DNA from: Macrostomum lignano
Lineage: Eukaryota
Assembly (NCBI GenBank): GCA_002269645.1
Contig: NIVC01001867.1
Location: 62,001-126,000 of the forward strand
DNA: 64,000 bases
Reading direction: 5' to 3'
The translations under genes were made by a program, and so were the position numbers. Positions 11,912-43,559 of the stretch are shown piece after piece. The notes under the pieces are model-generated. The model did not search any database. It saw nothing but the letters and a program-made list of their open reading frames with translations, and was not told the DNA's origin. Position 1 is the stretch's first letter; each line of letters begins with the position of its first letter.

Positions 11912-12050
11912 CTGACCCTAACCCTAACCCTGTAACCCTAACTCTCCAACCATAGCCCTAACCCTAACCCTGTAACCCTGACTTTAACCATAGCCCTAAC
12001 CCTAACCCTGTAACCCTGAGTCTTTAACCATAGCCCTAACTCTAACCCTA
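11912..12050. repeat. Interstitial telomere-like (CCCTAA) degenerate repeat
   Basis: ACCCTAACCCTAACCCTGTAACCCT units recurring in a ~40-bp higher-order unit. Confidence 0.75.
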
Positions 12051-20800: not shown

Positions 20801-23800
20801 TCCAAAGAATTTGCCGTGTTCGTCATGCAAAATGCCGTAGTGGTGAGTGAATATTGGAAAGTTTTCTTAATCCCGAAGCAAAGTTCCTCTTTATAATGTC
20901 GATACATGGCTGCAAAGCTTTTGCCCTCAAAGACCTGCAAGATTTTCCCAACTAAGACACGATTCATCATGCATGTTCGAGTACATAGTACCTCCTGTGT
21001 TCAAGACTGTCAGATCGTGAGCGCTATCTTAACCTTGGTCTGTTTTTCAAACTGAGTCTGATCTACACATATGAAGACTTTAAGAAGCTAAATTTAAGTG
21101 GAATTCTCAGATATAACTTGTTTTATCAGGCTTCTATCAAAATGTTTTATCAGTCTATATAATAGAACGCGTCAAGGCTGACTTCAATGAAGCAACTGGT
21201 CCTTACCGGTCATTCGGCCCATTCTTGTCCACAGGTGAAGCCCAGAGGCGGTCCCGTCATTGCTGTCACCCGCCGCGGTCAGCTGTACGTCCACGCTGCC
21301 ACCGACCTTAAGGGTCGCCGATTGCGCGGCCTCTGCGGTACCTACGATGGCAACAAAAACACCGACTTCCTGAAGCCCGATGGTGACATTGACGACGTGC
21401 CAACAAGCTTCATGCGCTCTTGGAAGCAGGAAAAAACCTGCAAAGACAACGCCGAGGTTGAGGTGCCAAACAGCTGCGACCTGAACCCTGCGCGCTATCA
21501 ACAGGTGCAGACGCTTTGCCGAGAAATGAGAGACAAGCTAATCGGCGGCCTATTCGGCAACTGCCTTAGCGGGGGGGAGCGCGAGCACTTCGCACAGATG
21601 TGCCAGAGCGACCTGTGCGCCTGCACCAAATCTGACGAAAGCTGTCTGTGCGGCCTGTACAACCACATCGGCCACATGTGCTCTGCCAGGAAGATTGTTG
21701 TCGACTGGAAGAAAGAGCTGCCAGAATGCGGTAGGTCACTTTCGATTTTGAAAGCCGGTTAATACCCCATTTGCAACCCGTCCAGACGGACGGGAATATT
21801 TCGTATCGTTTATCAGCTACTGGCACTGAATACCCATTAATTTTGCAGGCGCCAGCTGCCCCAGCGGCATGGTCTGGAAGCCGTGCGTAGACTACTGCAA
21901 GTACTCATGCTCGGCTCTGAGCCTTGGCAACCGTTGCGACTCTTCGGACGTCTGCGTTGCCGGTTGCGTCTGTCCTAACGGCCAGGTGCAGCACGAGGGT
22001 CGCTGCGTCAGCGTCAGCGAGTGCAAGTGCGAGTTCGACGGACGCGATTTCCCACCGGGAACGTCTGTTAGCAAGGGAAACGAGACATGGTGAGTGGATA
22101 GAAACTTAAAATGTGTTTGGTACTGTCAAGAACGACTTGTCCCAAACTGATAGCACTGAAGACAATTGGTCAAACCCAAGCAATTCTGTAGTAAAGCCCG
22201 CTTTTGCCCATCCTGCAGTGAATGCAATTACGGCGAGTGGCACTGCAAGCCCGGGCCGTGTCCCGGCTGCGATTCCATCTGCCCTCAGGGCAAAGAGTAC
22301 ACTCCGTGCCGGTCCAACTGCCCGGCAACCTGTGCCACGGGACTTGGCGGAGTCGGCTGTAACCAGACTTGCGACCGCGACGGCTGCCAATGCCCCCCAG
22401 GCATGGTTGAAGATGACAAAGGAGAGTGCAAACGGCCTGAAGACTGCACCTGCTCTCACAATGGCAAGGATTATAAAGAGGGCGATGTCATCCAGCATCC
22501 ATCATGCATTGATTGGTGAGCTTGTTAAGTATAAGCTACTGTCTCCACTCGGACTCTGAGAGTTGTATCCTTGTCAATTTTCACTCCAACGCAAACTTCC
22601 GAATTTTAGTGTCTGCAAACGGTCCAAGTGGGACTGCAACAGACGGCCCAGCTGCGCCTCCATGTGCAGCGTGTGGGGCCTCGGCCACTTTGAAACCTTC
22701 GACGGCGCCCAATACAGCGTAAAGGGCCGTTGCGAATACGTGCTGACTCAGTCAGCTGACTGGGAGGCAGGGGGCAGCATCGACCGGATGCGCTTCAGAA
22801 TTCTGGCTAGCTTCACCAGCTGCAGCACCTCGGGCGCAACGTGCATTGGCTACGTGATGGTGCAATACAAGCTGGCTAAATCATTCCTCCTCAAGTCATT
22901 CGCCATGCGCTCGCGCAACATGATCTGGGAAGACGCGCAGAGCAGTATCACTCACGACCACGGCACAGTGCTTCGTCATACGACGGACAAGCTGTTCAGC
23001 ATCGTGCACCTCGTAGACATAGGCGTGACTGTGTACTTTGACCAGCAGAGCAGGGTCTATATATCTTTGGATGATCGCCATCGCGAAAATGTTCGAGGTC
23101 TGTGCGGAACATTCGACAATGACCAGAAAACGGACTTTGTGGGCCCAGCTTCCAACATGATCATCGACCGGGTCCCAGAGTTTGTTGACAAGTGGAAGAC
23201 ACGAGCGGCCTGTCCCAACGCGGAGCTGCTGGTTGACAATTGCGATGCGGTCAAGGATAGAGAGACCTGGGCTAAAACCAGATGCAAGGAGGTTCTACTC
23301 GACCATGTTAACATCAGCAAGTGTCACGCAATGGTTGACCCAATGCCTTTTTACGAAAACTGCGTGCAGGACTCCTGCCTGTGCGATAAGGGAGGCGACT
23401 GCGAGTGCTTCTGCGCCAATGTCGCTCACTATGTGCAGAAGTGCAACCAAGTTGGGGTGCACGTGCACTGGCGAAGCCAGACTATCTGTCCGATGCAGTG
23501 CGACGAAGACTGTGACCATGTCACTCCATGTAAATCGGTTTGCCCACCCAAGACGTGTTTGAATAAGGACAGACACGACGAACTGTTGCGGGACACCGCC
23601 TGCCAGGACTTGATGTGCATCGAGGGTTGCGAGTCGGAGCCCTGCCCGCCTGGAACAGTGCTGCATGAAGGCAAATGCGTTAACGAAAGCATCTGCGAGT
23701 GCACCTGCCGTTTCAACGGCCGAGACTATGGAGAGGGCGAGCGCATCACAGATCCCGAAGTTTGCGACCCGTGCCAAAACTGCTTCTGCGGCTGCAATAA

Positions 23801-26800
23801 CACCCTTGTAAAAACAGGAGATCCCTGTACAACGAGCGGCCCCTCTACTGTGTCTACAGCTACCCCGGCTACTCCGTTTCCGCCTCTCTGTGACACCACT
23901 GGTTGGACTCGGTGGATGAACGCTTCGTCTCCAATCTCCGGCGACGGTGACTACGAAATAATTCCGAATCTCCGTCGTCACTATCAATTCTGCGAGGTCG
24001 ATGATATTTCCAAGGTAGACTACAAAGCACTGGAGCCTGTGGACCCGGCTGAGGTTGACAAACAGGTAAAGCAAATTGGCAAGTCAGTCGGTCTTGTCTG
24101 CAAGAACAGTCAGCAAATTGCTCACGCTCGCTGCTTTGACTATGCGGTTCGATTCTACTGTGTCTGCGGCGTTACAAGCCCAACCTCGAGTTCGCCTCCT
24201 GAAAGTTCCAGCACGCCTAGCACAACTAAGTCCACCTGGTCAACGTGGAGCACTTTTACTGCGTCTACAACAGAATCCATCTGGTCAACGTTGAGTACTC
24301 GTACTTCTACTTCACCTACAACAGAATCTACCTGGCCAAGGTGGAATACGTCAACGCCGCAGCCATCGACAACAACAGCTACTGAAGGCACTACAACTCC
24401 GCAAGGAGCCTGCGCGGACGGTTGGACTCAGTGGATAAATATTAACAAGCCAACCACTGGTCTGCAAGGGGGCGAGTCAGAATCTCTGCCGGAGATCGAG
24501 AGGCAAATGGGAAAAATTTGTGCAGGCGGCAAAATCGAGCAAATACAGTGCCGGGATGTGTCCGTGCACAGGCAGAACATTGGTTACAACACTCAGTTTG
24601 GCCAGTGCTCGCTGGCCAATGGCCTTCGTTGCCTGAACAAAGACCAAGCCGGACTATCCAGCACCAAGCAGTGCTACGATTATGAAGTTCGATTCTTCTG
24701 CAGGTGCTCTCCGAACGTTTGCCCGCCACCGACTGTGGAAAGAGGCATTGTCTGGGAGCTGCCCGACTCCGCCTTTGCAGCCAGCAGTTTCCGAGGCAAG
24801 GACCCGATGCACGGCCCGCAGCGAGCCAGGATCAACACCAAGAAGGACAGCTCTGGCTATGGCGCTTGGACGGCAGACACGAAGGATTCGACACCGTGGA
24901 TTGAAGTTCAAGTGCCCGAAGCCCTGCAGTTTGTTGGACTGCGCACTCAAGGCCGCCAGGATATGCACCAGTTCGTCAACGAATTCACCATGGAAGTCAG
25001 CGAGGACTGCAGAAATTTCCAACCTATCCTGGGAGGCAAGGTAAATAAAAATTGCAAAAAATTTCGGCTAGCACTTTCGTATCTAGAAAGTACACTTTCA
25101 GCCTTGATTTATTGATATTTATATCCGGGGAAGTTTCTCGACCTAATTAGCGCAACCAACGGCATTGCGTGTTGCTTATTGATGTAAATATATCCATAAA
25201 GTTAAAGTTTATTCGACATAATTCTTAGTGAAAATTACTGCCCTGATATTTCCCTCCAGCCACTCGACGCCAACGTAGATCAGAACACGGCCGTGACCAA
25301 CTACTTCTCGAGAGACTTGCAGACGGTCACGGCAAAGTGCATTCGGCTGCACCCGAAGCGATTCTACGGATCGGCCAGCGTCAGGTTGGACCTCATCCAG
25401 TGCGGTGAGTGAAGCTCAAATTAAGGCTGCAGTTGGACTATAAATACAATTTTTTAAGCAAATTCTGACATCATTTCGCTTTAGAAACCAGATCCACGCC
25501 GACAGAGCTGCCGACCACAACAGCTAGCAGCAGCATCAGTCCCACAACATCCTGTTACTATGACGACTGCGCAATGAAATGCACACTCATCTGCCACTAC
25601 TTCGACTCCAAGCTGAAAGAGATCGGCTACTGCAGCAGCAACTCCTCCAACTGCGTTCCCGGCTGCAAGACAATTGACTGCCCGGATGGCTTCTACAAAA
25701 GCAGGGATGAGTGCGTCAGAGAGAAACAGTGCCCCTGCATGGATGACCAGGGAAGAGAAGTGCCGCCAGGGACAATCTGGGACGTTGAGGAGTGCAAATA
25801 CAAAATCTGCCGCAACAACACAGTGGAGCAGGTCATAATTCCTGGCTGTGAGCCGAGCACCACAGCCTTCACGCCACAAAACAATAGGACGAGGCCATAT
25901 ACACCTTCTGCAACGCCCGGAACTTCTACCGTCTGTGAGGAGTGGACCGACTGGATCAACCTCGACAACCCGTCTACCGGTGAGGGCGACATCGAGACCA
26001 TCGACAAGGCCAGAGACCGCTGGCCCGGATTCTGTCCTCAGCCAATCAGCATTCAGTGCAGAGACTCCGACAGCAAGAAGGACGTCACCGACATTCCTCA
26101 GGAGCTCATCTGCGATGTGAACCAGGGCCTTGTGTGCAAGAACGAGCACCAGTACCCGACCAAGTGCCTTGACTTCGAGGTCCGCTACTTCTGCGAGTGC
26201 TTCGGTGAGTAATCGTTTATTCGGCATGATGTTTTGAATAGCGGAACGTTGGCTCAATTTAATATTTTATGTTAACGGTAACTACTCTGAGGGTCTAGTT
26301 GGACTAACTTTGAACATATGCAGGGATCTAATGTTTCAGTATTTTTTCCATAAATGTTTGTACCTGAAGGCTGTTGATGCATGCATCCCAGGACAATAGC
26401 TCAAACAAGTAGCAGTTTGAGTAAAAGTAAGCATTGTATAACGCCGCAAAACAGTGGCTAAAATCTTGTGTGAGTTTTTCAATAAATAAGATAAGAGAAA
26501 TTCCTGATGTTATAAAATGACTTCCTGCCGTTTTTAGAGACAGAAAGTGTGGCGACAACACGAAGTTCACAAGGAACACAAAGTACTGAAAGTACGCCAT
26601 TCACGTCACCCAACGGCTCCTCGACAACACCGCAAACTGCGACGGCAACTTTTATGACTTCAGAAAGAACGCAAGCAACGCCTGAGTCCAGTACAACAGC
26701 TGAGCCTCAGGAGCCATCCTCATCTGCTCAAACGCGCACTACTTGGCCAGGAATCAGCCCCACAAAAACATCACCGGGACTGATTACCGATACTCCCGTT

Positions 26801-29800
26801 CCTTGCATTCAAACGGCGCCAACATTCCGGGTATTCAACAATGGGGAAAGAATTTTTCACAGTGCTGCTGATTTGATTAGAAAAAGCAAGTTGAACTGCC
26901 AGTATATTGTAAACTTGGAATGCGACGCTACAGATGGCAGCGACGCTAGAGTGGACTGCAGCAAAACCAATGGCTTTACTTGCAACCCGATGCTTCAAAT
27001 GTTTCATGAATGTCCGGCGTTTGACATCAGTTTGACCTGCCTGCTAGACTTGCCCCATTGCAGAAATGCTACTTCAACAATACCTGCAACGCCTTCCGAG
27101 CCAGGCATTTCGTCAACGCCAAATGAGGCATCAAGCCCACGAACTCCGTCTCAGTCTCCAGAGACTCCGAGCCCGAGAACTCCGTCTCAGTCTCCAGAGA
27201 CTCCGAGTCCGAGAACTCCGTCTCAGTCTCCAGAGAATCCGAGCCCGAGAACTCCGTCTCAGTCTCCAGAGACTCCGAGCCCAAGAACTCCGTCGCCGTA
27301 CACGCCTTCGGCAACGCCTGGAACTTCTACCGTCTGTGAGGAGTGGACCGACTGGATCAACCTCGACAACCCGTCTACCGGTGAGGGCGACATCGAGACC
27401 ATCGACAAGGCCAGAGACCGCTGGCCCGGATTCTGTCCTCAGCCAATCAGCATCCAGTGCAGAGACTCCGACAGCAAGAAGGACGTCACCGATATTCCTC
27501 AGGAGCTCATCTGCGATGTGAACCAGGGCCTTGTGTGCAAGAACGAGCACCAGTACCCGACCAAGTGCCTTGACTTCGAGGTCCGCTACTTCTGCGAGTG
27601 CTTCGGTGAGCATTTGTTCAGTTTGAACTAAAATTTGACGATAACTACCCTGATTTTGAAGTATCATTCGGCCTGTGTTAATTAGTTGTAACAGCCACAC
27701 TACGCTTGTAAGACACCCTTTGTTTTATTGCACTGCGACTTGCTCTCACACCTCGCATTGTCGCTCGTAGCGCACATTACGTGCACAATTTTAAAACTTT
27801 TTATTGACTGCCAGCATTCGGGCGGAGCAGTGCAGCGGTAAAGAAATTTAATAGACCTGAAACCTTTAGCAAATTAAATTGAGCTTTAAATTTTATTCAG
27901 CTTCATCAGCTGTCTGATAAAGTAAACTGCCAGAGCAGATGATTGGTTTCCCAACAAGCGCGACCCACCGATGCCCACAAGTTACTGGGAAGGAACAGAA
28001 AGTCGGCAAGTCCGGCAGACTGGGAGCAAAATTTAACAGAATCTGTCGGGCCAACAAACCAAGGCAATATTTTGCGCTACCAAAATTGCGCGAAAAACTG
28101 TCACAGCCACTACTCGTTTTGCTGTGATGATGAGGTCACCTTTATGCCCCCATTTTAAACAAATTTAACTGCTTCGTATGACGCTGGATATATATACCAG
28201 GATTGAATGTTTGGAAATTTTCATTTCAGAAACGCAGACTCCTACGGAATCAACAAGGACTCCGAGCCCTCGGACTCCGTCTCAGTCTCCAGAGACTCCG
28301 AGCCCGAGAACTCCGTCTCAGTCTCCAGAGACTCCGAGCCCGAGAACTCCGTCTCAGTCGCCAGAGACTCCGAGCCCAAGAACTCCGTCTCAGTCTCCAG
28401 AGACTCCGAGCCCAAGAACTCCGTCTCAGTCTCCAGAGACTCCGAGTCCGAGAACTCCGTCTCAGTCTCCAGAGACTCCAAGCCCGAGAACTCCGTCTGA
28501 AGCACCGGAAACTCCGAGCCCGAGAACTCCGTCTGAAGCACCGGAAACTCCGAGCCCGAGAACTCCGTCTGAAGCACCGGAAACTCCGAGCCCGAGAACT
28601 CCGTCTCAGTCTCCAGAGACTCCGAGCCCGAGAACTCCGTCTCAGTCTCCAGAGACTCCGAGCCCGAGAACTCCGTCTCAGTCGCCAGAGACTCCAAGCC
28701 CAAGAACTCCGTCTCAGTCTCCAGAGACTCCGAGCCCAAGAACTCCGTCTCAGTCTCCAGAGACTCCGAGTCCGAGAACTCCGTCTCAGTCTCCAGAGAC
28801 TCCAAGCCCGAGAACTCCGTCTGAAGCACCGGAAACTCCGAGCCCGAGAACTCCGTCTCAGTCTCCAGAGACTCCGAGCCCAAGAACTCCGTCTCAGTCT
28901 CCAGAGACTCCGAGCCCACGAACTCCGTCTCAGTCTCCAGAGACTCCGAGCCCGAGAACTCCGTCTCAGTCTCCAGAGACTCCGAGCCCGAGAACTCCGT
29001 CGCCATACACGCCTTCTGCAACGCCCGGAACTTCTACCGTCTGTGAGGAGTGGACCGACTGGATCAACCTCGACAACCCGTCTACCGGTGAGGGCGACAT
29101 CGAGACCATCGACAAGGCCAGAGACCGCTGGCCCGGATTCTGTCCTCAGCCAATCAGCATCCAGTGCAGAGACTCCGACAGCAAGAAGGACGTCACCGAC
29201 ATTCCTCAGGAGCTCATCTGCGATGTGAACCAGGGCCTTGTGTGCAAGAACGAGCACCAGTACCCGACCAAGTGCCTTGACTACGAGGTCCGCTACTTCT
29301 GCGAGTGCTTTGGTAAGCTTTTACGTTTTATCCTCGACTTTTGTTTGCATGCTGTAAGTCTGAAGGTTTTGATATCTCGGAGGGAAATTGTCCTCAGTGA
29401 AATTCTTTTCAGCTGCTCTTCATTCCAAGCGGGCCTTTACCGGTATAAGAAAAAATTAGAATTTCAAAAAAATCGAATATGTGAGAAAAGAAGCATTTTT
29501 GCAGATACGTATAGCTTTTTAGGAGTTTGAATCACGGCGAACACTTTGGTGGGTTTTATGTGAGCATTTTTTGCATTTTGCGTAGTTTGACGTTTTAAAA
29601 ATATAGTACTGCTTTGTACGCTCGTAGATGTGAAAACAACAGAGCTATCGCACGAGGAAGAACTGCTGGTACAGACACTCATCTGTATCATTCTCGCCTT
29701 ACAGATTTCCGCACACAACCTACCAGACCAACTGAAAATAGCTCTACATCCTCAAGAGTACCAGAGGAGAGCTCTACATCCTCAAGGATCCCAGAGGAAA

Positions 29801-32800
29801 GCACCACATCGCCAAGAGCACCAGAGGAGAGCACCACATCGCCAAGAGCACCAGAGGAGAGCACCACATCGCCAAGAGCACCAGAGGAGAGCACCACATC
29901 GCCAAGAGCACCAGAGGAGAGCACCACATCGCCAAGAGCACCAGAGGAGAGCACCACATCGCCAAGAGCACCAGAGGAGAGCTCACCATCCAAAGCCACT
30001 GGATTAACTGGTTTTACCACGACACCTGAGCGAGAAGGCCCCTCTCCAACTACATCCGTCTGCGAGGAGTGGACCCCATGGATAAACCTTGACCGGCCCA
30101 GCACAGGCCATGGCGACGTGGAGACCATGGAGAAGGCCAGACGCAAATGGCCGAACTTCTGTCCAAAGCCAATGAAAATCCAGTGCAGAGACGCAGGCAG
30201 CAAGATTTCAGTTGACCAGGTGTCTCAGGAGCTGCTCTGCGATCTGGAGCACGGCCTGCTGTGCATTAATGAGAACCAGTACCCGAACAACTGCAACGAC
30301 TATGAAATCCGATTCTACTGCGACTGCTACGGTGAGTCCAACCAGTGCCAATGTGTTGAGAGTTGCAACTCCGACCAGTGTTTTTTCAACTCCAATCTCA
30401 ATTACAATACCTTGATTAATTTTTACCATTCTGGCTACAGTTCAACAGCGCTCTGAGTCGCTATCAATTAGAGAGGCGTAGACAAAATATTTTTATCTAC
30501 TCGTTTCAAAGGCTGATAAAGAGGTATTTTATAGTTAACTTACCGACCAAGTATTTGATCAGATAAGCATGCAGTGTAATATACAGAGTGCCGGCCTCAT
30601 GGCAAGGCTCTGTGCGCGCTGATTGTCTCACTGAATGCTCAGGTTTTGAGCAGCACATATAAAATTTCATTAAAAACCCAAAACATTCTTGTTATAACAT
30701 TCGGGCAAGCCACAATATATGAGCGTCAATTTAGATTAATCCCTCTCCCCTCTTCACTGCGGTCAAAATCTGTCCCTACTCATAGGATAAGTAGTAGAAC
30801 ATGCATGTTTAAAGACAATTTCTCTCGAGTGCGTAAAAATTAAATTGGAAGGAAGGAAACTCGTGCGTGTGCATGGGCTGGCACAGGCCTGCCTGATCAT
30901 GGGCTGGCACAGGCCTGCCTGTTCATGGGCTGGCACACGCCTGCCTGATCATGGGCTGGCACAGGCCTGCCTGTTCATGGGCTGGCACACGCCTGCCTGA
31001 TCATGGGCTGGCACAGGCCTGCCTGTTCATGGGCTGGCACAGGCCTGCCTGTTCATGGGCTGGCACACGCCTGCCTGATCATGGGCTGGCACAGGCCTGC
31101 CTGTTCATGGGCTGGCACAGGCCTGCCTGATCATGGGCTGGCACAGGCCTGCCTGTTCATGGGCTGGCACAGGCCTGCCTGTTCATGGGCTGGCACAGGC
31201 CTGCCTGTTCATGGGCTGGCACAGGCCTGCCTGTTCATGGGCTGGCACAGGCCTGCCTGTTCATGGGCTGGCACAGGCCTGCCTGTTCATGGGCTGGCAC
31301 AGGCCTGCCTGTTCATGGGCTGGCACAGGCCTGCCTGTTCATGGGCTGGCACACGCCTGCCTGATCATGGGCTGGCACAGGCCTGCCTGTTCATGGGCTG
31401 GCACAGGCCTGCCTGTTCATGGGCTGGCACAGGCCTGCCTGTTCATGGGCTGGCACAGGCCTGCCTGTTCATGGGCTGGCACAGGCCTGCCTGTTCATGG
31501 GCTGGCACAGGCCTGCCTGTTCATGGGCTGGCACAGGCCTGCCTGTTCATGGGCTGGCACAGGCCTGCCTGTTCATGGGCTGGCACAGGCCTGCCTGTTC
31601 ATGGGCTGGCACACGCCTGCCTGATCATGGGCTGGCACAGGCCTGCCTGTTCATGGGCTGGCACAGGCCTGCCTGTTCATGGGCTGGCACAGGCCTGCCT
31701 GTTCATGGGCTGGCACACGCCTGCCTGTTCATGGGCTGGCACAGGCCTGCCTGTTCATGGGCTGGCACAGGCCTGCCTGTTCATGGGCTGGCACAGGCCT
31801 GCCTGTTCATGGGCTGGCACAGGCCTGCCTGTTCATGGGCTGGCACACGCCTGCCTGATCATGGGCTGGCACAGGCCTGCCTGTTCATGGGCTGGCACAG
31901 GCCTGCCTGTTCATGGGCTGGCACAGGCCTGCCTGTTCATGGGCTGGCACAGGCCTGCCTGTTCATGGGCTGGCACAGGCCTGCCTGTTCATGGGCTGGC
32001 ACAGGCCTGCCTGTTCATGGGCTGGCACACGCCTGCCTGTTCATGGGCTGGCACAGGCCTGCCTGTTCATGGGCTGGCACAGGCCTGTCTGATCATGGGC
32101 TGGCACACGCCTGCCTGTTCATGGGCTGGCACACGCCTGCCTGATCATGGGCTGGCACAGGCCTGCCTGATCATGGGCTGGCACAGGCCTGCCTGTTCAT
32201 GGGCTGGCACAGGCCTGCCTGTTCATGGGCTGGCACAGGCCTGCTTGTTCATGGGCTGGCACAGGCCTGCCTGTTCATGGGCTGGCACAGGCCTGCCTGT
32301 TCATGGGCTGGCACAGGCCTGCCTGTTCATGGGCTGGCACAGGCCTGCCTGTTCATGGGCTGGCACACGCCTGCCTGTTCATGGGCTGGCACAGGCCTGC
32401 CTGTTCATGGGCTGGCACAGGCCTGCCTGTTCATGGGCTGGCACAGGCCTGCCTGTTCATTGGCTGGCACAGGCCTGCCTGTTCATGGGCTGGCACAGGC
32501 CTGCCTGTTCATGGGCTGGCACACGCCTGCCTGATCATGGGCTGGCACAGGCCTGCCTGTTCATGGGCTGGCACAGGCCTGCCTGTTCATGGGCTGGCAC
32601 AGGCCTGCCTGTTCATGGGCTGGCACAGGCCTGCCTGTTCATGGGCTGGCACACGCCTGCCTGTTCATGGGCTGGCACACGCCTGCCTGATCATGGGCTG
32701 GCACAGGCCTGCCTGATCATGGGCTGGCACAGGCCTGCCTGTTCATGGGCTGGCACAGGCCTGCCTGTTCATGGGCTGGCACACGCCTGCCTGTTCATGG

Positions 32801-35800
32801 GCTGGCACAGGCCTGCCTGTTCATGGGCTGGCACAGGCCTGCCTGTTCATGGGCTGGCACACGCCTGCCTGTTCATGGGCTGGCACACGCCTGCCTGTTC
32901 ATGGGCTGGCACAGGCCTGCCTGTTCATGGGCTGGCACAGGCCTGTCTGATCATGGGCTGGCACACGCCTGCCTGTTCATGGGCTGGCACACGCCTGCCT
33001 GTTCATGGGCTGGCACACGCCTGCCTGATCATGGGCTGGCACAGGCCTGCCTGTTCATGGGCTGGCACAGGCCTGCCTGTTCATGGGCTGGCACAGGCCT
33101 GCCTGTTCATGGGCTGGCACAGGCCTGCCTGTTCATGGGCTGGCACAGGCCTGCCTGTTCATGGGCTGGCACAGGCCTGCCTGTTCATGGGCTGGCACAG
33201 GCCTGCCTGTTCATGGGCTGGCACACGCCTGCCTGTTCATGGGCTGGCACAGGCCTGCCTGTTCATGGGCTGGCACAGGCCTGTCTGATCATGGGCTGGC
33301 ACACGCCTGCCTGTTCATGGGCTGGCACACGCCTGCCTGATCATGGGCTGGCACAGGCCTGCCTGTTCATGGGCTGGCACAGGCCTGCCTGTTCATGGGC
33401 TGGCACAGGCCTGCCTGTTCATGGGCTGGCACAGGCCTGCCTGTTCATGGGCTGGCACAGGCCTGCCTGTTCATGGGCTGGCACAGGCCTGCCTGTTCAT
33501 GGGCTGGCACACGCCTGCCTGTTCATGGGCTGGCACAGGCCTGCCTGTTCATGGGCTGGCACAGGCCTGCCTGTTCATGGGCTGGCACACGCCTGCCTGT
33601 TCATGGGCTGGCACAGGCCTGCCTGTTCATGGGCTGGCACAGGCCTGTCTGATCATGGGCTGGCACACGCCTGCCTGTTCATGGGCTGGCACACGCCTGC
33701 CTGATCATGGGCTGGCACAGGCCTGCCTGATCATGGGCTGGCACAGGCCTGCCTGTTCATGGGCTGGCACAGGCCTGCCTGTTCATGGGCTGGCACAGGC
33801 CTGCCTGTTCATGGGCTGGCACAGGCCTGCCTGTTCATGGGCTGGCACACGCCTGCCTGATCATGGGCTGGCACAGGCCTGCCTGTTCATGGGCTGGCAC
33901 AGGCCTGCCTGTTCATGGGCTGGCACAGGCCTGCCTGTTCATGGGCTGGCACAGGCCTGCCTGTTCATGGGCTGGCACACGCCTGCCTGATCATGGGCTG
34001 GCACAGGCCTGCCTGTTCATGGGCTGGCACAGGCCTGTCTGTTCATGGGCTGGCACTCGCCTGTTCATGGGCTGGCACAGGCCTGCCTGTTCATGGGCTG
34101 GCACAGGCCTGCCTGTTCATGGGCTGGCACAGGCCTGCCTGATCATGGGCTGGCACAGGCCTGCCTGTTCATGGGCTGGCACAGGCCTGCCTGTTCATGG
34201 GCTGGCACACGTCTGCCTGATCATGGGCTGGCACAGGCCTGCCTGATCATGGGCTGGCACAGGCCTGCCTGTTCATGGGCTGGCACAGGCCTGCCTGTTC
34301 ATGGGCTGGCACACGCCTGCCTGTTCATGGGCTGGCACACGCCTGCCTGATCATGGGCTGGCACACGCCTGCCTGTTCATGGGCTGGCACAGGCCTGCCT
34401 GTTCATGGGCTGGCACACGCCTGCCTGTTCATGGGCTGGCACACGCCTGTCTGATCATGGGCTGGCACACGCCTGCCTGATCATGGGCTGGCACAGGCCT
34501 GCCTGATCATGGGCTGGCACAGGCCTGTCTGTTCATGGGCTGGCACACGCCTGTTCATAGGTTGGCACAGGCCTGCCTGATCATGGGCTGGCACAGGCCT
34601 GTCTGTTCATGGGCTGGCACACGTCTGCCTGATCATGGGCTGGCACAGGCCTGCCTGTTCATGGGCTGGCACAGGCCTGCCTGTTCATGGGCTGGCACAG
34701 GCCTGCCTGTTCATGGGCTGGCACACGCCTGCCTGTTCATGGGCTGGCACACGCCTGCCTGATCATGGGCTGGCACACGCCTGCCTGTTCATGGGCTGGC
34801 ACAGGCCTGCCTGTTCATGGGCTGGCACACGCCTGCCTGTTCATGGGCTGGCACACGCCTGCCTGATCATGGGCTGGCACACGCCTGCCTGATCATGGGC
34901 TGGCACAGGCCTGCCTGATCATGGGCTGGCACAGGCCTGTCTGTTCATGGGCTGGCACACGCCTGTTCATAGGTTGGCACAGGCCTGCCTGATCATGGGC
35001 TGGCACAGGCCTGTCTGTTCATGGGCTGGCACACGCCTGCCTGATCATGGGCTGGCACAGGCCTGTCTGTTCATGGGCTGGCACTCGCCTGTTCATGGGT
35101 TGGCACAGGTCTGCCTGATCATGGGCTGGCACAGGTCTGCCTGTTCATGGGCTGGCACAGGCCTGCCTGTTCATGGGCTGGCACAGGCCTGCCTGTTCAT
35201 GGGCTGGCACACGCCTGCCTGTTCATGGGCTGGCACACGCCTGCCTGATCATGGGCTGGCACAGGCCTGTCTGTTCATGGGCTGGCACTCGCCTGTTCAT
35301 GGGTTGGCACAGGTCTGCCTGATCATGGGCTGGCACAGGTCTGCCTGTTCATGGGCTGGCACAGGCCTGCCTGTTCATGGGCTGGCACAGGCCTGCCTGT
35401 TCATGGGCTGGCACACGCCTGCCTGTTCATGGGCTGGCACACGCCTGCCTGTTCATGGGCTGGCACAGGCCTGCCTGTTCATGGGCTGGCACAGGCCTGC
35501 CTGTTCATGGGCTGGCACAGGCCTGCCTGTTCATGGGCTGGCACAGGCCTGCCTGTTCATGGGCTGGCACAGGCCTGCCTGTTCATGGGCTGGCACAGGC
35601 CTGCCTGTTCAACTGGGCCTTTTAAAGACTAAAATTTCTACAGTTCTCCAAGTTTCTAAAGGTTTTAGAGGGCTTTCTACAGTTTATTAAGAAAAAAAAT
35701 GATTAAAGTACCTGTAAAATATGATTTGTGAAGTGATTAATCCAGTTAATACATCATCTGTGAGGCGCACTTCTAAATACCGTGAATTAGATCTGACTAG

Positions 35801-38800
35801 ATTCACAAACATCAGGTTCCAATACAGATGAAGCCTCGCATTGGGCTCCAATCTTGTAGATTAGAGTTCCTCCAAAAGATTGCTGCGAGAACACCTTGAA
35901 ATTTACATGAGCTGAACTGGGCAGCTTCGTTATGAACGCCAAGCCAAGAAAAAATACCGCGTAATATTCTACTTCTAATCCTTCTTGAAAGTAATCACAA
36001 AAATAGATTCAATAGCAAATATGAGTAAATATTCTGATTAAAAATCTAAGTTAAACATATTACAAAGTTACATACTCGTAATGATCGGGTAAATTTTAAG
36101 GCCCAACAATACTTTAAAATTTTCAGAAAAAGATATTTCATCATCACCGTCTCAGTCACCGGAAACTCCGAGCCCGAGAACTCCGTCTGAAGCACCGGAA
36201 ACTCCGAGCCCGAGAACTCCGTCTGAAGCACCGGAAACTCCGAGCCCGAGAACTCCGTCTCAATCTCCAGAGACTCCGAGCCCGAGAACTCCGTCTCAAT
36301 CTCCAGAGACTCCGAGCCCGAGAACTCCGTCTCAGTCTCCAGAGACTCCGAGCCCGAGAACTCCGTCTCAGTCTCCAGAGACTCTGAGCCCGAGAACTCC
36401 GTCTCAGTCTCCAGAGACTCCGAGCCCGAGAACTCCGTCTCAGTCTCCAGAGACTCCGAGCCCGAGAACTCCGTCTCAGTCGCCAGAGACTCCGAGTCCG
36501 AGAACTCCGTCTCAGTCGCCAGAGACTCCGAGCCCACGAACTCCGTCTCAGTCTCCAGAGACTCCGAGCCCGAGAACTCCGTCTGAAGCACCGGAAACTC
36601 CGAGCCCGAGAACTCCGTCTCAATCTCCAGAGACTCCGAGCCCGAGAACTCCGTCTCAATCTCCAGAGACTCCGAGCCCGAGAACTCCGTCTCAGTCTCC
36701 AGAGACTCCGAGCCCGAGAACTCCGTCTCAGTCTCCAGAGACTCCGAGCCCGAGAACTCCGTCTCAGTCTCCAGAGACTCCGAGCCCGAGAACTCCGTCT
36801 CAGTCGCCAGAGACTCCGAGTCCGAGAACTCCGTCTCAGTCGCCAGAGACTCCGAGCCCACGAACTCCGTCTCAGTCTCCAGAGACTCCGAGCCCGAGAA
36901 CTCCGTCTGAAGCACCGGAAACTCCGAGCCCGAGAACTCCGTCTCAATCTCCAGAGACTCCGAGCCCGAGAACTCCGTCTCAATCTCCAGAGACTCCGAG
37001 CCCGAGAACTCCGTCTCAGTCTCCAGAGACTCCGAGCCCGAGAACTCCGTCTCAGTCTCCAGAGACTCCGAGCCCGAGAACTCCGTCTCAGTCTCCAGAG
37101 ACTCCGAGCCCGAGAACTCCGTCTCAGTCGCCAGAGACTCCGAGTCCGAGAACTCCGTCTCAGTCGCCAGAGACTCCGAGCCCACGAACTCCGTCTCAGT
37201 CTCCAGAGACTCCGAGCCCGAGAACTCCGTCTCAGTCTCCAGAGAATCCGAGCCCGAGAACTCCGTCTCAGTCGCCAGAGACTCCGAGCCCACGAACTCC
37301 GTCTCAGTCGCCAGAGACTCCGAGCCCACGAACTCCGTCTCAGTCGCCAGAGACTCCGAGTCCGAGAACTCCGTCTCAGTCTCCAGAGACTCCGAGCCCA
37401 CGAACTCCGTCGCCGTACACGCCTTCTGCAACGCCCGGAACTTCTACCGTCTGTGAGGAGTGGACCGACTGGATCAACCTCGACAACCCGTCTACCGGTG
37501 AGGGCGACATTGAGACCATCGACAAGGCCAGAGACCGCTGGCCCGGATTCTGTCCGCAGCCAATCAGCATCCAGTGCAGAGACTCCGACAGCAAGAAGGA
37601 CGTCACCGACATTCCTCAGGAGCTCATCTGCGATGTGAACCAGGGCCTTGTGTGCAAGAACGAGCACCAGTACCCGACCAAGTGCCTTGACTACGAGGTC
37701 CGCTACTTCTGCGAGTGCTTCGGTAGGTTTCTCTCCGGCTTGGTAATATCTTAATATTTTTATGATCGGCTCCTCTTGCCTCATCGTTCTACACCTATTT
37801 GACTGCATTGCGCGTTGCACATCAGAGTTAGGTGTTATTCTTAGGTAGAGGCACGTACAGATTATTAGGATAAGCTGTGTTTGTAAACAGTTAACAGCAG
37901 AGTTATGTATTTGGATCGAGTCGAAACAAGAGAGTTGAAAAGCGTATTGCAGTTTAATTTGCTCTTCAAGCGACTATCTGCGGGGAATTCAGCAATAGAC
38001 AAGAGCTGTTCAATATTAAGAAGCATTCTAGAATATTCCATACGTGGAAGGTGAATCTGCTTATTAAATCAGAACATATCAGTAATTGACAATTACATGC
38101 ATAGCATTGAATTTAGCTTAGTAGAAATTACTCGTATTCTACTTGCAATTTTTTTCATTTTTGCTTAGAAAAAACCGCAGATAATTAGAATACCTAGATG
38201 GGCCACTCAGCACACTTGCGTGTAAGCTACTTTCAGTTCAGTAGTAAGTTAAATAGAAACATATTAATGTATTTTTAAAGCCAAGGCTCATTAACTGACT
38301 ATTACCCCCAGCTTAAACCCTCTAACCGCGCTTTTCCACACTACCCTCCGCCACGCCCACCCCAATTTTTATTGCCTTTCTTGGAATTCCAGCCTAAAGC
38401 TGGCATGTACATTTCAGTTGGACTGGCTGATGCACATTACTGCTTAACCAATCAGCAAGTTGTTTACGCCTGCAAGCTTGGGCTTCCTAACTTATCAAAG
38501 TCATTTTACTGGCCTTTATTTACGTAAAATAGCTTATGCATTCTTCTTTGCTACTGAACTGAAAGTAGAAAGCTGTTTTACGAGTGACTACGACGTAAGT
38601 ATGCATTAAAGGCCAGCGAGGTCGTTTGAAAACACAACACCTGATATTCGTAATTTCAAGTGTACAAAGCTACATAAGATGAAATGTTTACCAAGCAAAA
38701 GAAATTTGAATTTCAGAGACGCAGACTCCTTCCGAATCAACAAGGACTCCGAGCCCTCGAACTCCGTCTCAGTCTCCAGAGACTCCGAGCCCGAGAACTC

Positions 38801-41800
38801 CGTCTCAGTCTCCAGAGACTCCGAGCCCGAGAACTCCGTCTCAGTCGCCAGAGACTCCGAGCCCTCGAACTCCGTCTGAGTCGCCAGAGACTCCGAGCCC
38901 GAGAACTCCGTCTCAGTCTCCAGAGACTCCGAGCCCGAGAACTCCGTCTCAGTCTCCAGAGACTCCGAGCCCAAGAACTCCGTCTCAGTCTCCAGAGACT
39001 CCGAGCCCAAGAACTCCGTCGCCGTACACGCCTTCTGCAACGCCCGGAACTTCTACCGTCTGTGAGGAGTGGACCGACTGGATCAACCTGGACAACCCGT
39101 CTACCGGTGAGGGCGACATCGAGACCATCGACAAGGCCAGAGACCGCTGGCCCGGATTCTGTCCGCAGCCAATCAGCATCCAGTGCAGAGACTCCGACAG
39201 CAAGAAGGACGTCACCGACATTCCTCAGGAGCTCATCTGCGATGTGAACCAGGGCCTTGTGTGCAAGAACGAGCACCAGTACCCGACCAAGTGTCTTGAC
39301 TTCGAGGTCCGCTACTTCTGCGAGTGCTTTGGTAAGTTTCTCTTGGCTTCAAGGCTATCTGGAACATTTTTGTAATCTGTTTCTCAGACTTTATCGTCAC
39401 TCTCCTTCAAAAAGATTGGTTCTAAGAGCGTAAACCTATTCGACTGCGCGTTGCGCAGAAGAGTTTGGTTAAATTTATAAAAACTACGTATAATTTCCTA
39501 TATTCAAACAGTTAATTTACCTTGCTTAGATAAAAGTAATTTTGTGTTCTACTATCGAATGGAGGCTTACCTAGAAGGAGAGAGTTAATAATTTTCCAGC
39601 TTATCACTGAAATTAAATACCTACTACCCGTAAAAACTCGAAAAGGAAAGATTTTAACTTCGTAGAAATATTTTCCTCTTCAGTGAAAGACTTTGTTTTT
39701 AAAGTAATATACGAGTACATATATAAACTAAATAAAGATATATACGAGTATAAGCTTTCCCAAGCAGTAAAAGTTTCTGCATTGAAGGGTGGTATTTCAT
39801 TGAGATACAGTTGATAGTTTCTACAGTACAAAGCTACATACGCTCGTACTCGTACGTTGGAAAGTTAACAAACACAAGAAATTTTAACTTCAGAGACGCA
39901 GACTCCTTCCGAATCAACAAGGACTCCGAGCCCTCGAACTCCGTCTCAGTCTCCAGAGACTCCGAGCCCGAGAACTCCGTCTCAGTCTCCAGAGACTCCG
40001 AGCCCTCGAACTCCGTCTCAGTCTCCAGAGACTCCGAGCCCGAGAACTCCGTCTCAGTCTCCAGAGACTCCAAGCCCAAGAACTCCGCCTCAGTCGCCAG
40101 AGACTCCAAGTCCGAGAACTCCGTCTCAGTCTCCAGAGACTCCGAGCCCAAGAACTCCGTCTCAGTCTCCAGAGACTCCGAGCCCGAGAACTCCGTCTCA
40201 GTCTCCAGAGACTCCGAGTCCGAGAACTCCGTCTCAGTCTCCAGAGACTCCGAGCCCGAGAACTCCGTCTCAGTCTCCAGAGACTCCGAGTCCGAGAACT
40301 CCGTCTCAATCTCCAGAGACTCCGAGCCCGAGAACTCCGTCTGAAGCACCGGAAACTCCGAGCCCACGAACTCCGTCGCCGTACACGCCTTCTGCAACGC
40401 CCGGAACTTCTACCGTCTGTGAGGAGTGGACCGACTGGATCAACCTGGACAACCCGTCTACCGGTGAGGGCGACATCGAGACCATCGACAAGGCCAGAGA
40501 CCGCTGGCCCGGATTCTGTCCGCAGCCAATCAGCATCCAGTGCAGAGACTCCGACAGCAAGAAGGACGTCACCGACATTCCTCAGGAGCTCATCTGCGAT
40601 GTGAACCAGGGCCTTGTGTGCAAGAACGAGCACCAGTACCCGACCAAGTGCCTTGACTACGAGGTCCGCTACTTCTGCGAGTGCTTCGGTATGTACTGCA
40701 CCACCTGATTTTTCTCAGTGCAACTACTGGTACGAACTAATTGGCACTTTTGTCAACAATTCTATCGTTTGTTTCAGAAACGCAGACGCCGTCCGTATCA
40801 ACAAGAACGCAGAGCCCAAGGACGGTAACACAGGAAACTACAATCGGTAAGCTCATATTTCGATAGGGAAATACGAGCGTAATATTGCTTTATTAATGTT
40901 TTTTAAATTAACAAATTGCTACCTTTCCTAATTCGTTTCAGTCACGAAGAATAAGGAAGAAAGTAAGGAGCCTGTATATGCTGTTCTTTCATAGTGTTTT
41001 TTTCTTGAGCTGTACATCCTCTGCTAAGCCTATGTCGCTACCTTAAAGCTCTTATAGTGCCTACAGTCCTAAAAAGTCTTTACGTTCGATTTTAACAAAA
41101 CTTTCTTTGTTTGTCAAGTCTGTTCATACAATATTATCGATTGGGCAATTCATTTCGATACACTGCAGTGGATTGAGATGTGAACTGGGAATTACAAGAC
41201 AACTACGAGCTACATGTACAGTACATGAAAACGTAAACGCGCAAGCTTTAGCTGAGGCTGAAACTCGTATATAAACCGTATAGAAGAAGCACACAACCAA
41301 ATGGGGTCATGGTCTCCAGACGAACTCATCTAATCTGATTGTTTCAGCTGGAGAAACGGCCACGACGAAGGAGAGGCCGACGCCACCGACATGGTCCACG
41401 CCACCGCCGGGCGTCTGCCCGGGCGTGAACGACACTTCGCTGTGCCCCGCCCGGTGCCCCGCGCCTCTCATGTGCGACGGTCTGAGCTGCGTTGAAGAGT
41501 GCCCATGCATTATTGAGGGCCGCAGGATCAAGGTTAGCGCTTTGTGCAGTACAAATGGGTACAATTCCTGAGTTAGTCTCGAGCACAATTTCTTTAGTGT
41601 ACATGTAGTATAGGTGCTACGGCCTTGGAACATTTCATGCATACAAAGTTGAGTACTAGGCAACAAAACTTAATGAAACGATATTGTCTTGCAGCCTGGT
41701 CACGTGATTAAGACTTCGGACTGTCAGCTGTGCACCTGCATCAGCAACGGCATCTACCATTGCACCCCATTTGTTTGCCCAAGCTGTCCGCCCGGAAAGC

Positions 41801-43559
41801 AGCTGATTAGCTCGGGCCCACCGAGTTGCGAGTGCGAGTGCGAAGAAGGCACTACAGCCGGCGGCAGCACCACAGCCAGCGGCAGCACCACAGTCGGTGG
41901 CAGCACCACAGTCGGTGGCAGCACCACCGTCAGCGGCAGCACCACCGTCAGCGGCAGCACCACAGCCGGCGGCAGCACCACAGCCGGCGGCAGCCCCACA
42001 GCCGGCGGCAGCACCACAGCCGGCGGCAGCACCACATCCAGCGGCAGCACCACAGCCGGTGGCAGCACCACCGTCAGCGGCAGCAGCGCCACCACCAGCG
42101 CAATCTTTACCACAAGCAAGGAACCGTCCCTGACGACAACTGGGCCTCGAGGCGTCTGTGTCTACCTCAGCAACCAGACCGAGAATGTCTACAGAGACGC
42201 CAACCGGCCAACAGACCTGATACAGATTGAACTCGAAATCGGCGACGTCCGCAAGGAGGGCAAGTGCCGCGTTTGCATTTGCTACGAGAGGTCTGGCCAG
42301 GAGCCGGAGCTCGTGTGCAAAGACACCGCCTGTCCGCCTGTCCGTGACTTTGAGTGCGCTGTCCAGTCGCGCGCCCAGCCCGGTGAGTGCTGCCCCCACG
42401 TGGAGAAATGCCGCTGCGAGATTAACGTCCAGGGCAAGTCGATCTACCTGAATGAAGGCGAGACTCACTGGCTGAGCAACTGCCGCGGAGTTCGGTGCGA
42501 GCGGAACCCGGATGACAAGGACTACTACAACCGAGTGATCGAGGTGGACACGCACAGGTGCTGCATCATTAACGGAACCGAGGTCGCCATCGGTGAGAAA
42601 ATTCCGTCGCATGAGAAATGCTACGAGTCCGAGTGCGCCAAGCTGCCCAACGGCGAACTGCGGGTCCAGGAGAAGCAGATCAAGTGCCCGCAAGTGCAGC
42701 CCTGCAGGCCGGGCGAGAAGCCCAAGCCAGACGAGTGCTGCGAGTCGTGCCGCCTGCCATGTAAGTTACTGATGGCTTTATCGGACTCTGAACTTGTAGT
42801 GTAGCTGCCGCAAGGAAACTGCGAGTAAATAGCCTATCAATATTGATGATAATAATAAGCCGTTTGATGTGGCTTAGCTGCCAAGACTTGATCAGAGACA
42901 TCAGAGAAATTTGCAATAGGGTGTCCAGTCACGAGGTGCCACCTGTTGAAGGTCCAGAAGCTCCACCTGGGGGAAGGCTTGTGACCAACGAAGTCAGAGC
43001 TGGTGCAGAGACACATGTAATGGACGTGCTGATGAAATCTTGAAGCTTGGCAAGGCCTCACTCAGGCGCTTAGCTGATTGGCGCACAGGGGTGTATTGAG
43101 TACACTGGCGCTTATGGGAACAATCCGACCTGTCAAAATCGTTGAATATCTTGACGGTCCAGAGGCCTATCAACTTGACACGCTCGTACTTGTTTACGTG
43201 AAACTTTATTTTCTCCACAAACCGCACCCTCAGCAATGGACGACTGCACGAACTGTACACTCAAGACCTACTCGCCCCTGCTGAGCACAATCGGCATCTT
43301 CAAGGCCAAAGTGAACAAGGCCGAATGCGAGAATCGGGAAGTGGTTGAAGATCTTCAATACTGCTCCGGCTACTGCCAGCCCTCAATGGCGGAGTGGGTG
43401 CAGGACCTGTACCTGAACCAGGGCAGCTCGCACTACTGCTGCCAAGCGGTGAGCACTCTGAGCAGGCCCATCAAGCTGACGTGCCCCGACCAGTCAGTGC
43501 ACACGAGGAACTTCCGCACAGCCAAGTCCTGCCAATGCCAGCCGTGCAGCGGACCATGA
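14860..43559 (+). CDS. Gel-forming mucin / hemolectin-like secreted protein; 24 exons, ~4556 aa
   Basis: Exons 14860-14915, 15022-15047, 16344-16437, 16746-16957, 17263-17908, 18936-19201, 19354-19700, 20579-20842, 21235-21730, 21849-22089, 22219-22515, 22610-25040, 25260-25404, 25485-26204, 26538-27605, 28230-29312, 29705-30331, 36127-37722, 38717-39331, 39894-40688, 40778-40846, 41348-41532, 41695-42760, 43234-43559. Total 13671 nt, all GT-AG with matching phases. Signal peptide MRSAQSELAAALLICLAAGLVSG; EGF (CRNGGVCEAPNQCRCPPGYGGPLC); three VWD (WGDSSYRTFDG, VGDIHYQTFDG, WGLGHFETFDG) with C8/TIL; WxxW/CysD domains; F5/8C; cystine knot (CSGYC..CC..CQCQPC). Confidence 0.92.
15165..15600. repeat. 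Intronic 20-bp minisatellite (GGGTCAAGTAGGTCAGGGAT)
   Basis: Tandem array in mucin intron 2; a related shorter run lies at 16440-16610. Confidence 0.9.
16266..16279. promoter_or_regulatory. Perfect palindromic RFX X-box (GTTGCCATGGCAAC)
   Basis: Exact 14-bp palindrome in mucin intron 2, ~65 nt upstream of the exon 3 acceptor. Confidence 0.6.
17085..17240. repeat. Short degenerate repeat (GGACACTCAATCACCC)
   Basis: Fills most of mucin intron 4. Confidence 0.85.
18193..18767. mobile_element. Short dispersed element with an internal 17-bp array (GTGTACAGAGGCCCTAA x25, 18290-18714)
   Basis: The flanks match 50373-50528 (TTACTGCCCATTC..CCTGAGCAGG..CGCGCGGATACGTACGCAGTC..ACTCACAC..TTATCGTTAGGCATGTACACTTCACTGTGCCTTGGGG..TTGGCCC). 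The array is 425 nt = 25 x 17. Confidence 0.85.
22610..25040 (+). CDS. Mucin exon 12: VWD3-C8-TIL, two CysD (WxxW) domains, Thr/Ser tract, start of F5/8 type C domain
   Basis: Contains DKGGDCECFCANVAHY..C, WTRWMN, WTQWIN, and AWTADTKDSTPWIEV..FVGLRTQGR. Confidence 0.92.
25485..40846 (+). CDS. Mucin exons 14-21: symmetric phase-1 cassettes, mostly [PTS repeat + CysD]
   Basis: Lengths 720, 1068, 1083, 627, 1596, 615, 795 and 69 nt are all multiples of 3 and flanked by phase-1 introns. The 36-bp repeat encodes SPETPSPRTPSQ; exon 17 carries a 30-bp repeat encoding TTSPRAPEES. Exon 18 (36127-37722) is missing from the ORF track because it has no start codon. Confidence 0.9.
30873..35610. repeat. 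26-bp satellite (ATGGGCTGGCACAGGCCTGCCTGTTC), ~180 copies, in mucin intron 17
   Basis: 4.7-kb highly homogeneous tandem array; variants have CACGCC or CCTGATC. Confidence 0.97.

Follow-up and report, generated by a model that had tools for sequence, protein, structure and literature searches.

A mucin-like gene of Macrostomum lignano with a run of symmetric spacer-CysD exons, probably shaped by duplication and exon-confined homogenisation

Introduction

Mucins of the MUC2/MUC5 type intersperse repeats in which proline, threonine and serine abound (PTS repeats) with CysD domains. The human MUC2 CysD domain forms non-covalent cross-links that set the pore size of the gel (Ambort 2011, PMC3195396), and extra CYS domains make mucus stiffer (PMC6861317). 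The PTS/CysD core of these mucins is usually described as a single giant exon, an arrangement that leaves splicing no way to vary gel architecture. Here we describe a mucin-like gene of the flatworm Macrostomum lignano that follows the same protein logic with separate, interchangeable exons. The gene lies in a 64,000-nucleotide stretch of genome assembly GCA_002269645.1 (contig NIVC01001867.1, positions 62,001 to 126,000 of the forward strand), which we call the window and whose own numbering we use throughout. This layout is real and is unusual for mucins.

Related systems have been described in birds and in lophotrochozoans. In chicken MUC2, the PTS/CysD region extends over exons 32-45, and one variant with an in-frame skip of a PTS exon was reported (Jiang et al. 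2013, PMC3549977); widespread alternative splicing of this gene was sought by its authors and not found (PMC3549977). For chicken Muc13, alternative splicing was explicitly proposed to control PTS length (Lang, Hansson & Samuelsson 2006, PMC1552070). Lophotrochozoans have mucin-like proteins that contain F5/8C as well as inserted CysD domains (Lang et al. 2016, PMC4948705). The first-pass annotation of the window offered the exon array as a possible splice-tunable mucin mesh and as the strongest candidate for an undescribed system. Given the proposal of splice-set PTS length in 2006 and the in-frame skip seen in 2013, that description was overstated.

Results

Nine consecutive exons are symmetric

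The array occupies positions 25485-40846 of the forward strand and consists of eight GT-AG exons, A to H. In every one, the acceptor is AG and the donor GT, the length is a multiple of three and a phase-1 intron lies on either side; their concatenated frame is free of stops. The first-pass annotation had proposed eight exons with these properties, and each was recovered at exactly the same coordinates. The array and the exons that border it are as follows.

Exon 11, 25260..25404, + strand: second half of the F5/8C domain (gene model, Pfam F5_F8_type_C); phase 0 in, phase 1 out; upstream border of the symmetric run.
Exon A, 25485..26204, + strand: 720 nt, phase 1-1; a short PTS, a Cys-rich stretch of no assigned class and a CysD; 12-aa repeats absent.
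Exon B, 26538..27605, + strand: 1068 nt, phase 1-1; unique S/T-rich PTS, predicted degenerate CysD-like module, 5 units of 12 aa (27134-27294), CysD.
Exon C, 28230..29312, + strand: 1083 nt, phase 1-1; 21 units of 12 aa (28258-29001), CysD.
Exon D, 29705..30331, + strand: 627 nt, phase 1-1; 8 units of 10 aa (30-bp array, 29746-29982), divergent CysD.
Exon E, 36127..37722, + strand: 1596 nt, phase 1-1; 35 units of 12 aa (36147-37411), CysD.
Exon F, 38717..39331, + strand: 615 nt, phase 1-1; 8 units (38745-39020), CysD.
Exon G, 39894..40688, + strand: 795 nt, phase 1-1; 13 units (39922-40377), CysD.
Exon H, 40778..40846, + strand: 69 nt, phase 1-1; no CysD; begins TQTPSVSTRTQSPRT.
Microexon, 40942..40962, + strand: 21 nt, phase 1-1; encodes VTKNKEE; between exon H and exon 20.
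Exon 20, 41348..41532, + strand: 185 nt; phase 1 in, phase 0 out; downstream border of the symmetric run (gene model).

The start of exon H resembles the starts of exons C, F and G, and exon H is best read as the 5' stub of a cassette exon. The microexon had been overlooked in the first pass. Its peptide, TTIVTKNKEETGETA, is present in the RNA-based protein model PAA54143.1 of M. lignano (BOX15_Mlig016789g1, hereafter P0029), to which the window's gene is near-identical, and its AG and GT flanks are present both in the window and in P0029's own genomic locus, a 33-kb region of assembly Mlig_3_7 (hereafter L001). With the microexon, the run comprises nine consecutive phase 1-1 exons with ten phase-1 introns around them. 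Outside it the intron phases of the gene model are mixed (2,1,2,1,0,0,1,2,2,0 upstream; 0,1 downstream). Since the last base is G in every array exon and A in the microexon, no combination of exons can create a stop codon at a junction. The earlier claim that any subset of these exons can be skipped without a frameshift stands. For this symmetry, a chance expectation of (1/3)^8 is the wrong null, because the cassette exons are paralogues of one another.

Seven cassettes end in CysD domains behind spacers of unequal length

A CysD module of about 100 aa closes seven of the eight array exons, as had been read from the letters alone. In a Pfam scan that covered exons A, B, D and F, the module scored 75-84 bits with PF13330 (Mucin2_WxxW), for which the curated cut-off is 22.4, and spanned all 88 positions of the model (E 6e-21 to 2e-23); exons C, E and G were assigned by their 98-99% nucleotide identity. 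The WxxW motif reads C-E-E-W-T-D-W, and the module aligns end to end with the solved human structures of MUC5B (8OER, E 2e-13), MUC2 (8CK2/6TM6) and MUC5AC (8OV0). These Pfam and PDB matches, together with the exact agreement between P0029 and the predicted junctions at D, E and H, at the microexon and at exon 20, rule out the cassettes as chance open reading frames. The view of CysD as a non-covalent cross-link in MUC2/MUC5, on which the first-pass annotation had drawn, is largely backed by the literature (PMC3195396, PMC6861317), non-covalent self-association and C-mannosylation being known only for human MUC2 CysD (PMC3195396); by analogy, the flatworm CysDs are predicted to act as cross-link nodes of the same kind.

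The spacers in front of the CysDs are built mostly from a 12-aa unit, TPSPRTPSQSPE, of which 75% is P/T/S. Tandem Repeats Finder (TRF) counted 4.5, 20.7, 35.1, 7.7 and 12.7 copies of the underlying 36-bp unit in exons B, C, E, F and G; for the 30-bp unit of exon D the figure was 7.9. These values agree with the earlier estimate of about 0, 4, 20, 35, 7 and 12 copies plus one exon with a 10-aa unit. Counted in register, the 36-bp units number 5, 21, 35, 8 and 13 in the same five exons, 82 altogether. The repeats of exon E show a higher-order period of nine units, and specific 36-bp variants are common to several arrays.

Exons A and B depart from the plain pattern. Exon A's Cys-rich N-terminal region, scanned against Pfam, gave no match. 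The 5' part of exon B (26538-27130) holds a unique S/T-rich stretch followed by a module with eight cysteines, which gives a sub-threshold match (E=0.0057) to the C-terminal two-thirds of the PF13330 model. This inner module is probably a degenerate CysD, in which case exon B would be two fused cassettes.

Near-identical exons are separated by nearly unalignable introns

Over their last 330 nt, exons B, C, E, F and G share 97.9-99.4% identity in pairwise comparison. Exon A reaches 93-94% over the same 330 nt, as the first 30 nt of the segment are non-homologous there; its CysD proper matches the others equally well. Within the roughly 300 nt of CysD there are just eight variable sites, nearly all of them synonymous. 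The CysD of exon D, which lies in the middle of the array and shares the protein fold, has 66% nucleotide identity to the others.

The identity ends with the exons. Only a few bases past each donor GT it is already at background level, and comparison of the whole introns between cassettes yielded only three alignable patches, of 26-44 nt. A trace of common origin is left in the 80-nt intron flanks, which are weakly but significantly similar, on the donor or acceptor side, among E, F, G and H and between A and B (E/F donors z 6.3, F/G acceptors z 8.0, A/B donors z 3.2). This residual similarity indicates that the duplicated unit was an exon plus an intron. Tandem duplication of an exon is tolerated only if the exon is symmetric, so the phase-1 run is a consequence of how the cassettes were duplicated and does not in itself speak for skipping.

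What keeps the exons alike would then act within exons. The introns have diverged almost beyond alignment, which makes the duplications old; recent duplication as the cause of exon identity is thereby ruled out. Purifying selection alone is also ruled out: the identity extends to synonymous sites, and exon D, subject to the same protein constraints, retains only 66% identity. The combination of old duplications with exons that are near-identical even at synonymous sites points to ongoing gene conversion or unequal exchange restricted to exons. The shared 36-bp variants and the higher-order periods match the expectation for unequal crossing-over.

A second copy of the locus differs in cassette number and repeat length

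P0029 was reached by an exhaustive HMMER search with the CysD sequence, a word-indexed protein search with the same query having returned no match. Its locus, L001, matches the window at 99.3-99.6% identity across unique DNA and has a different array. There, exon A is directly followed by the window's C-D intron, and the 33-kb locus as a whole contains neither the A-B intron nor the B-C intron, nor anything of exon B's unique part; exons B and C are absent. The states with and without B and C differ by 2.8 kb, in frame, and the difference both starts and stops within CysD repeats. Relative to the window, exon D of L001 has two more repeat units, exon E ten fewer (1236 nt) and exon F one fewer (579 nt), while exon G has the same 795 nt. 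Of the C-terminal 18-bp PTS repeat, L001 contains about 2 copies and the window 13. A noncoding repeat inside the array has also changed in length.

26-bp GC-rich minisatellite, 30864..35611, strand not applicable: 183 copies, 4.7 kb, noncoding; takes up the greater part of the D-E intron (5.8 kb); its length in L001 is about 0.8 kb.

L001 likewise contains exons E to H with their introns. The private single-nucleotide polymorphisms (SNPs) of E, F and G are kept in both copies, so these exons are orthologous.

That the two copies disagree on cassette number and on nearly every repeat length would fit an assembly artefact, in which part of the window's array (exons B and C, for example, or the repeat counts) came from mis-assembled near-identical repeats. 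Mis-joining of repeats, however, could not produce the roughly 600 nt of unique coding sequence in exon B or the unique introns that flank it. Exons E to H, their introns and their private SNPs recur in L001, and it is the window version that has a full open frame. The frameshift is in L001, where positions 23200-23220 contain CCCC against CCCCC in the window (42379-42400); it shifts the frame of PAA54143.1, which ends CCPTWRNAAARLTSRASRST. The C-run that is one base shorter in L001 reflects either a homopolymer error or a pseudogenised copy. An artefact of this kind in the window is, in our judgement, very improbable.

Duplication, exon-confined homogenisation and repeat drift best explain the array

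We favor a reading in which the cassette layout results from duplication, exon-confined homogenisation, drift in repeat length and recombinational gain and loss of cassettes, and we give it a probability of roughly 0.7. One ancestral phase 1-1 exon, made up of a PTS spacer and a CysD, would have been tandemly duplicated repeatedly to yield the array, with symmetry as a by-product of this history. Conversion or unequal exchange within exons would hold all but one of the seven CysD segments, and the 36-bp repeats with them, at 98-99% identity. Exon D would have escaped homogenisation and so would reveal the true age of the array. Spacer lengths would drift through minisatellite-type slippage and unequal crossing-over, and whole cassettes would be gained or lost by recombination between CysD copies. 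The main mRNA would then contain all cassettes and encode nine to ten CysD nodes with O-glycosylated rods of very unequal length between them.

Several points weigh against this reading. Constitutive inclusion of all cassettes is an assumption, and gene conversion is inferred from the contrast in identity between exons and introns. The differences in L001, including the missing B and C, could partly be assembly collapse, as it belongs to an older PacBio assembly and has a frameshift and mostly shorter repeats. Finally, P0029 joins exon E directly to exon H; it uses A, D, E and H along with the microexon and exon 20, and leaves out F and G, though both F and G are present in the L001 genome.

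The structure permits combinatorial splicing

The omission of F and G from P0029 is the one hint of splicing-based tuning. The splice sites predicted for D, E and H, for the microexon and for exon 20 are matched exactly by the junctions in P0029, which validates those sites. The model is also 5'-truncated, starting at an internal Met in exon 7. The annotation behind it was built from short reads, with StringTie/TACO plus a BLAT-mapped de novo assembly (PMC5730564). In L001, exons E and G are identical across their last 211 nt, and with short reads an E-to-H junction is therefore indistinguishable from a G-to-H junction. The omission is thus not evidence of regulated skipping.

The proposal made in the first pass, taken as regulated splicing of the cassettes, was that spacer lengths and the count of CysD nodes could be set combinatorially, tuning the pore size or stiffness of the mucus. 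In its favor, each of the nine exons is phase 1-1, the frame is kept whichever subset is included and no junction stop can arise; P0029 joins E to H although F and G both lie in that genome copy; CysD dosage alters gel properties in mammals (PMC3195396, PMC6861317); and in-frame PTS exon skipping has a precedent in chicken MUC2 (PMC3549977). Against this, symmetry was needed for duplication and is uninformative on splicing, and the one apparent skip comes from a model that is both truncated and frameshifted and whose reads could not separate E-to-H from G-to-H. The donors and acceptors of the cassettes look ordinary, with no sign of weak sites. Regulated cassette exons typically have conserved intron flanks, unlike the cassettes here, whose flanks are poorly conserved among paralogues. 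Regulated combinatorial splicing is therefore permitted by the structure but unsupported, and we regard it as unlikely. In its fullest form, regulated inclusion would extend over all nine exons, possibly refined by in-frame acceptors within the 36-bp repeats, with mesh size or stiffness varying by gland or life stage; this version seems equally improbable to us. If it were true, exon-confined homogenisation would keep the modules interchangeable.

Those internal acceptors are a feature of the repeats themselves. The 36-bp units hold a pyrimidine-rich CTCCGTCTCAGTCTCCAG/AGACTCC in the same phase as the true acceptors, and the pattern YCYCAGWCKCCAG/AGAMTC occurs at 60 sites. Each of these intra-repeat AGs could serve as a cryptic 3' splice site that keeps the frame, and they are likely to give rise to spurious spliced alignments. 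They also lend themselves to a reading as unregulated isoform noise, in which a minority of transcripts skip near-identical cassettes or use acceptors inside the repeats, giving shorter proteins with no programmed function. The 60 sites lie in phase with the true acceptors, P0029 is without F and G, and chicken MUC2 used internal splice sites within PTS exons (PMC3549977); on the other side, cryptic sites located 3' of a good acceptor are normally ignored. We consider such in-frame heterogeneity possible though doubtful, and more likely than regulated combinatorial splicing. Duplication followed by exon-confined homogenisation, with all cassettes in the main mRNA, is still the reading that we prefer.

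The array is the core of a gene for a predicted secreted polymer-forming protein

The array forms the central part of a larger gene.

Mucin-like gene as modelled, 16746..43559 (stop), + strand: exons 2-22, 21 GT-AG exons, one open frame of about 4,497 aa.

Exon 1 (16344-16437, the start of a Sushi domain) was seen upstream and left out of the gene model; neither the gene's true 5' exon nor a signal peptide was found. A 20-bp minisatellite, AGTAGGTCAGGGATGGGTCA, at 15163-15542 and 16430-16560 was apparently seeded from the donor site of this exon, and the string CAACCTCTTCCTGTGAGTGGGTCA recurs at about 15545, 16427 and 16487.

The order of domains is Sushi/EGF, three VWD-C8-TIL units, two CysDs, F5/8C, the cassette array, VWC, a short PTS, VWC and a cystine knot; Pfam identified VWD, C8, F5_F8_type_C, Mucin2_WxxW, Cys_knot and EGF. 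Three VWD regions were placed at 17.25-19.2, 19.3-21.8 and 22.6-23.8 kb by tblastn with 20 mucin and hemocytin homologues. Pfam support for VWD and C8 covers the D3 exon, and D1 and D2 rest on tblastn; the best database matches of the D3 region include insect hemocytin. The two CysDs that precede the array and the F5/8C domain are located in and after the large exon 10, with F5/8C (PF00754, E 7e-9) following the third VWD unit and running from exon 10 into exon 11. Downstream of the array, Pfam scans and tblastn gave no VWD-type match, only VWC-like modules. A second, C-terminal PTS (41849-42085) consists of 13 copies of an 18-bp unit (GSTTAG-type), and the last exon (43234-43559) encodes a C-terminal cystine knot (PF00007, 30.8 bits against a cut-off of 24). 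On this architecture, the gene is a mucin-like gene, M. lignano locus Mlig016789, with a product that is predicted to be secreted and to form polymers. A literature search on Mlig016789 returned no paper, and one for long-read transcript resources of M. lignano yielded nothing of use.

The window is eukaryotic in character and rich in minisatellites. Upstream of the mucin gene lie ankyrin repeats (2833-3276, +), a 362-aa multi-pass membrane open reading frame (7392-8477, -) with no Pfam match and no exact database record, and an interstitial, degenerate telomere-like (CCCTAA)n tract (11915-12050). Downstream are the C-terminal exon of mitoguardin (Miga; 45787-46377, -), a gene that itself points to M. 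lignano, and a RING-H2 finger (48626-48928, -). Miga and the RING gene are syntenic in L001. Positions 54268-58533 hold the body of a Ty3/gypsy-like long terminal repeat retrotransposon, whose reverse transcriptase, RNase H and integrase reading frames are broken across several frames.

Discussion

The array is a clear natural case of exon-restricted concerted evolution, with exons that are 98-99% identical and introns between them that can hardly be aligned. The number of cassettes can change by recombination, as seen between two copies of the locus, with the caveat that L001 may have been collapsed in assembly. The public annotation of Mlig016789 is truncated, frameshifted and missing cassettes. 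The gene also documents PTS-CysD alternation in a lophotrochozoan, a pairing that Lang et al. 2016 (PMC4948705) stressed for deuterostomes. Because M. lignano is a laboratory animal with RNA interference, transgenesis and regeneration assays, the 20-year-old idea of splice-set mucin length becomes directly testable.

Titin PEVK/Ig and similar springs use symmetric duplicated exons, and differential inclusion of these exons tunes mechanics, as is documented for titin. This resembles how a splice-tuned mucin mesh would work. The protein families are unrelated, and splicing is documented in titin whereas in the flatworm it is a proposal. Among mucins, chicken Muc13 likewise has a single repeat unit per exon and near-identical exons; it differs in being a transmembrane mucin with 20-aa units, without CysD and without polymerising domains. 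Chicken MUC2 is closer in kind, being gel-forming with a PTS/CysD region across many exons, but its exons hold 69-aa PTS repeats with CysD in only some of them, and no regular cassette of spacer plus CysD is present. A metagenome scan for related loci yielded one irrelevant 41% match.

The front half of the flatworm gene, with F5/8C after the third VWD, matches that of the hemolectin/hemocytin-type mucin-like proteins of lophotrochozoans and arthropods (PMC4948705). It lacks their '+2' C-terminal VWDs and has instead a PTS-CysD array, VWC and a cystine knot, a rear part like that of vertebrate mucins. Membership in the insect-type hemocytin family was ruled out, as Pfam and tblastn revealed no two C-terminal VWD-C8-TIL units.

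The comparison with vertebrate MUC5AC, MUC5B and MUC2 runs through the whole gene. Three VWD-C8-TIL units, PTS repeats interspersed with CysD and a cystine knot are shared with mucins of the MUC2/MUC5 type. The flatworm gene adds F5/8C and an N-terminal Sushi/EGF region and is without the fourth VWD-C8-TIL, a unit that MUC6 and MUC19 also lack (PMC4948705). A eukaryotic contig (ENA ERZ25071447 ctg87132, L004) has a similar domain neighbourhood, an open reading frame with F5/8C and CysD, yet it is followed by a single 4.4-kb open reading frame with 11 CysDs, so that many CysDs share one exon. The first-pass annotation held that vertebrate PTS/CysD regions lie largely within one giant exon. This is borne out in both of the vertebrate MUC5AC-type genes that we mapped, where the region is a single exon of 11.9 or 12.6 kb (for MUC5AC of Ammospiza 3,962 aa, and for a mucin-5AC-like gene of Synchiropus about 4,170 aa), and it does not extend to chicken MUC2, with its exons 32-45 (PMC3549977). 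The vertebrate and flatworm genes have in common near-identical units, which imply concerted evolution, and a variable number of repeats; what sets the flatworm gene apart is that each unit is its own phase 1-1 exon.

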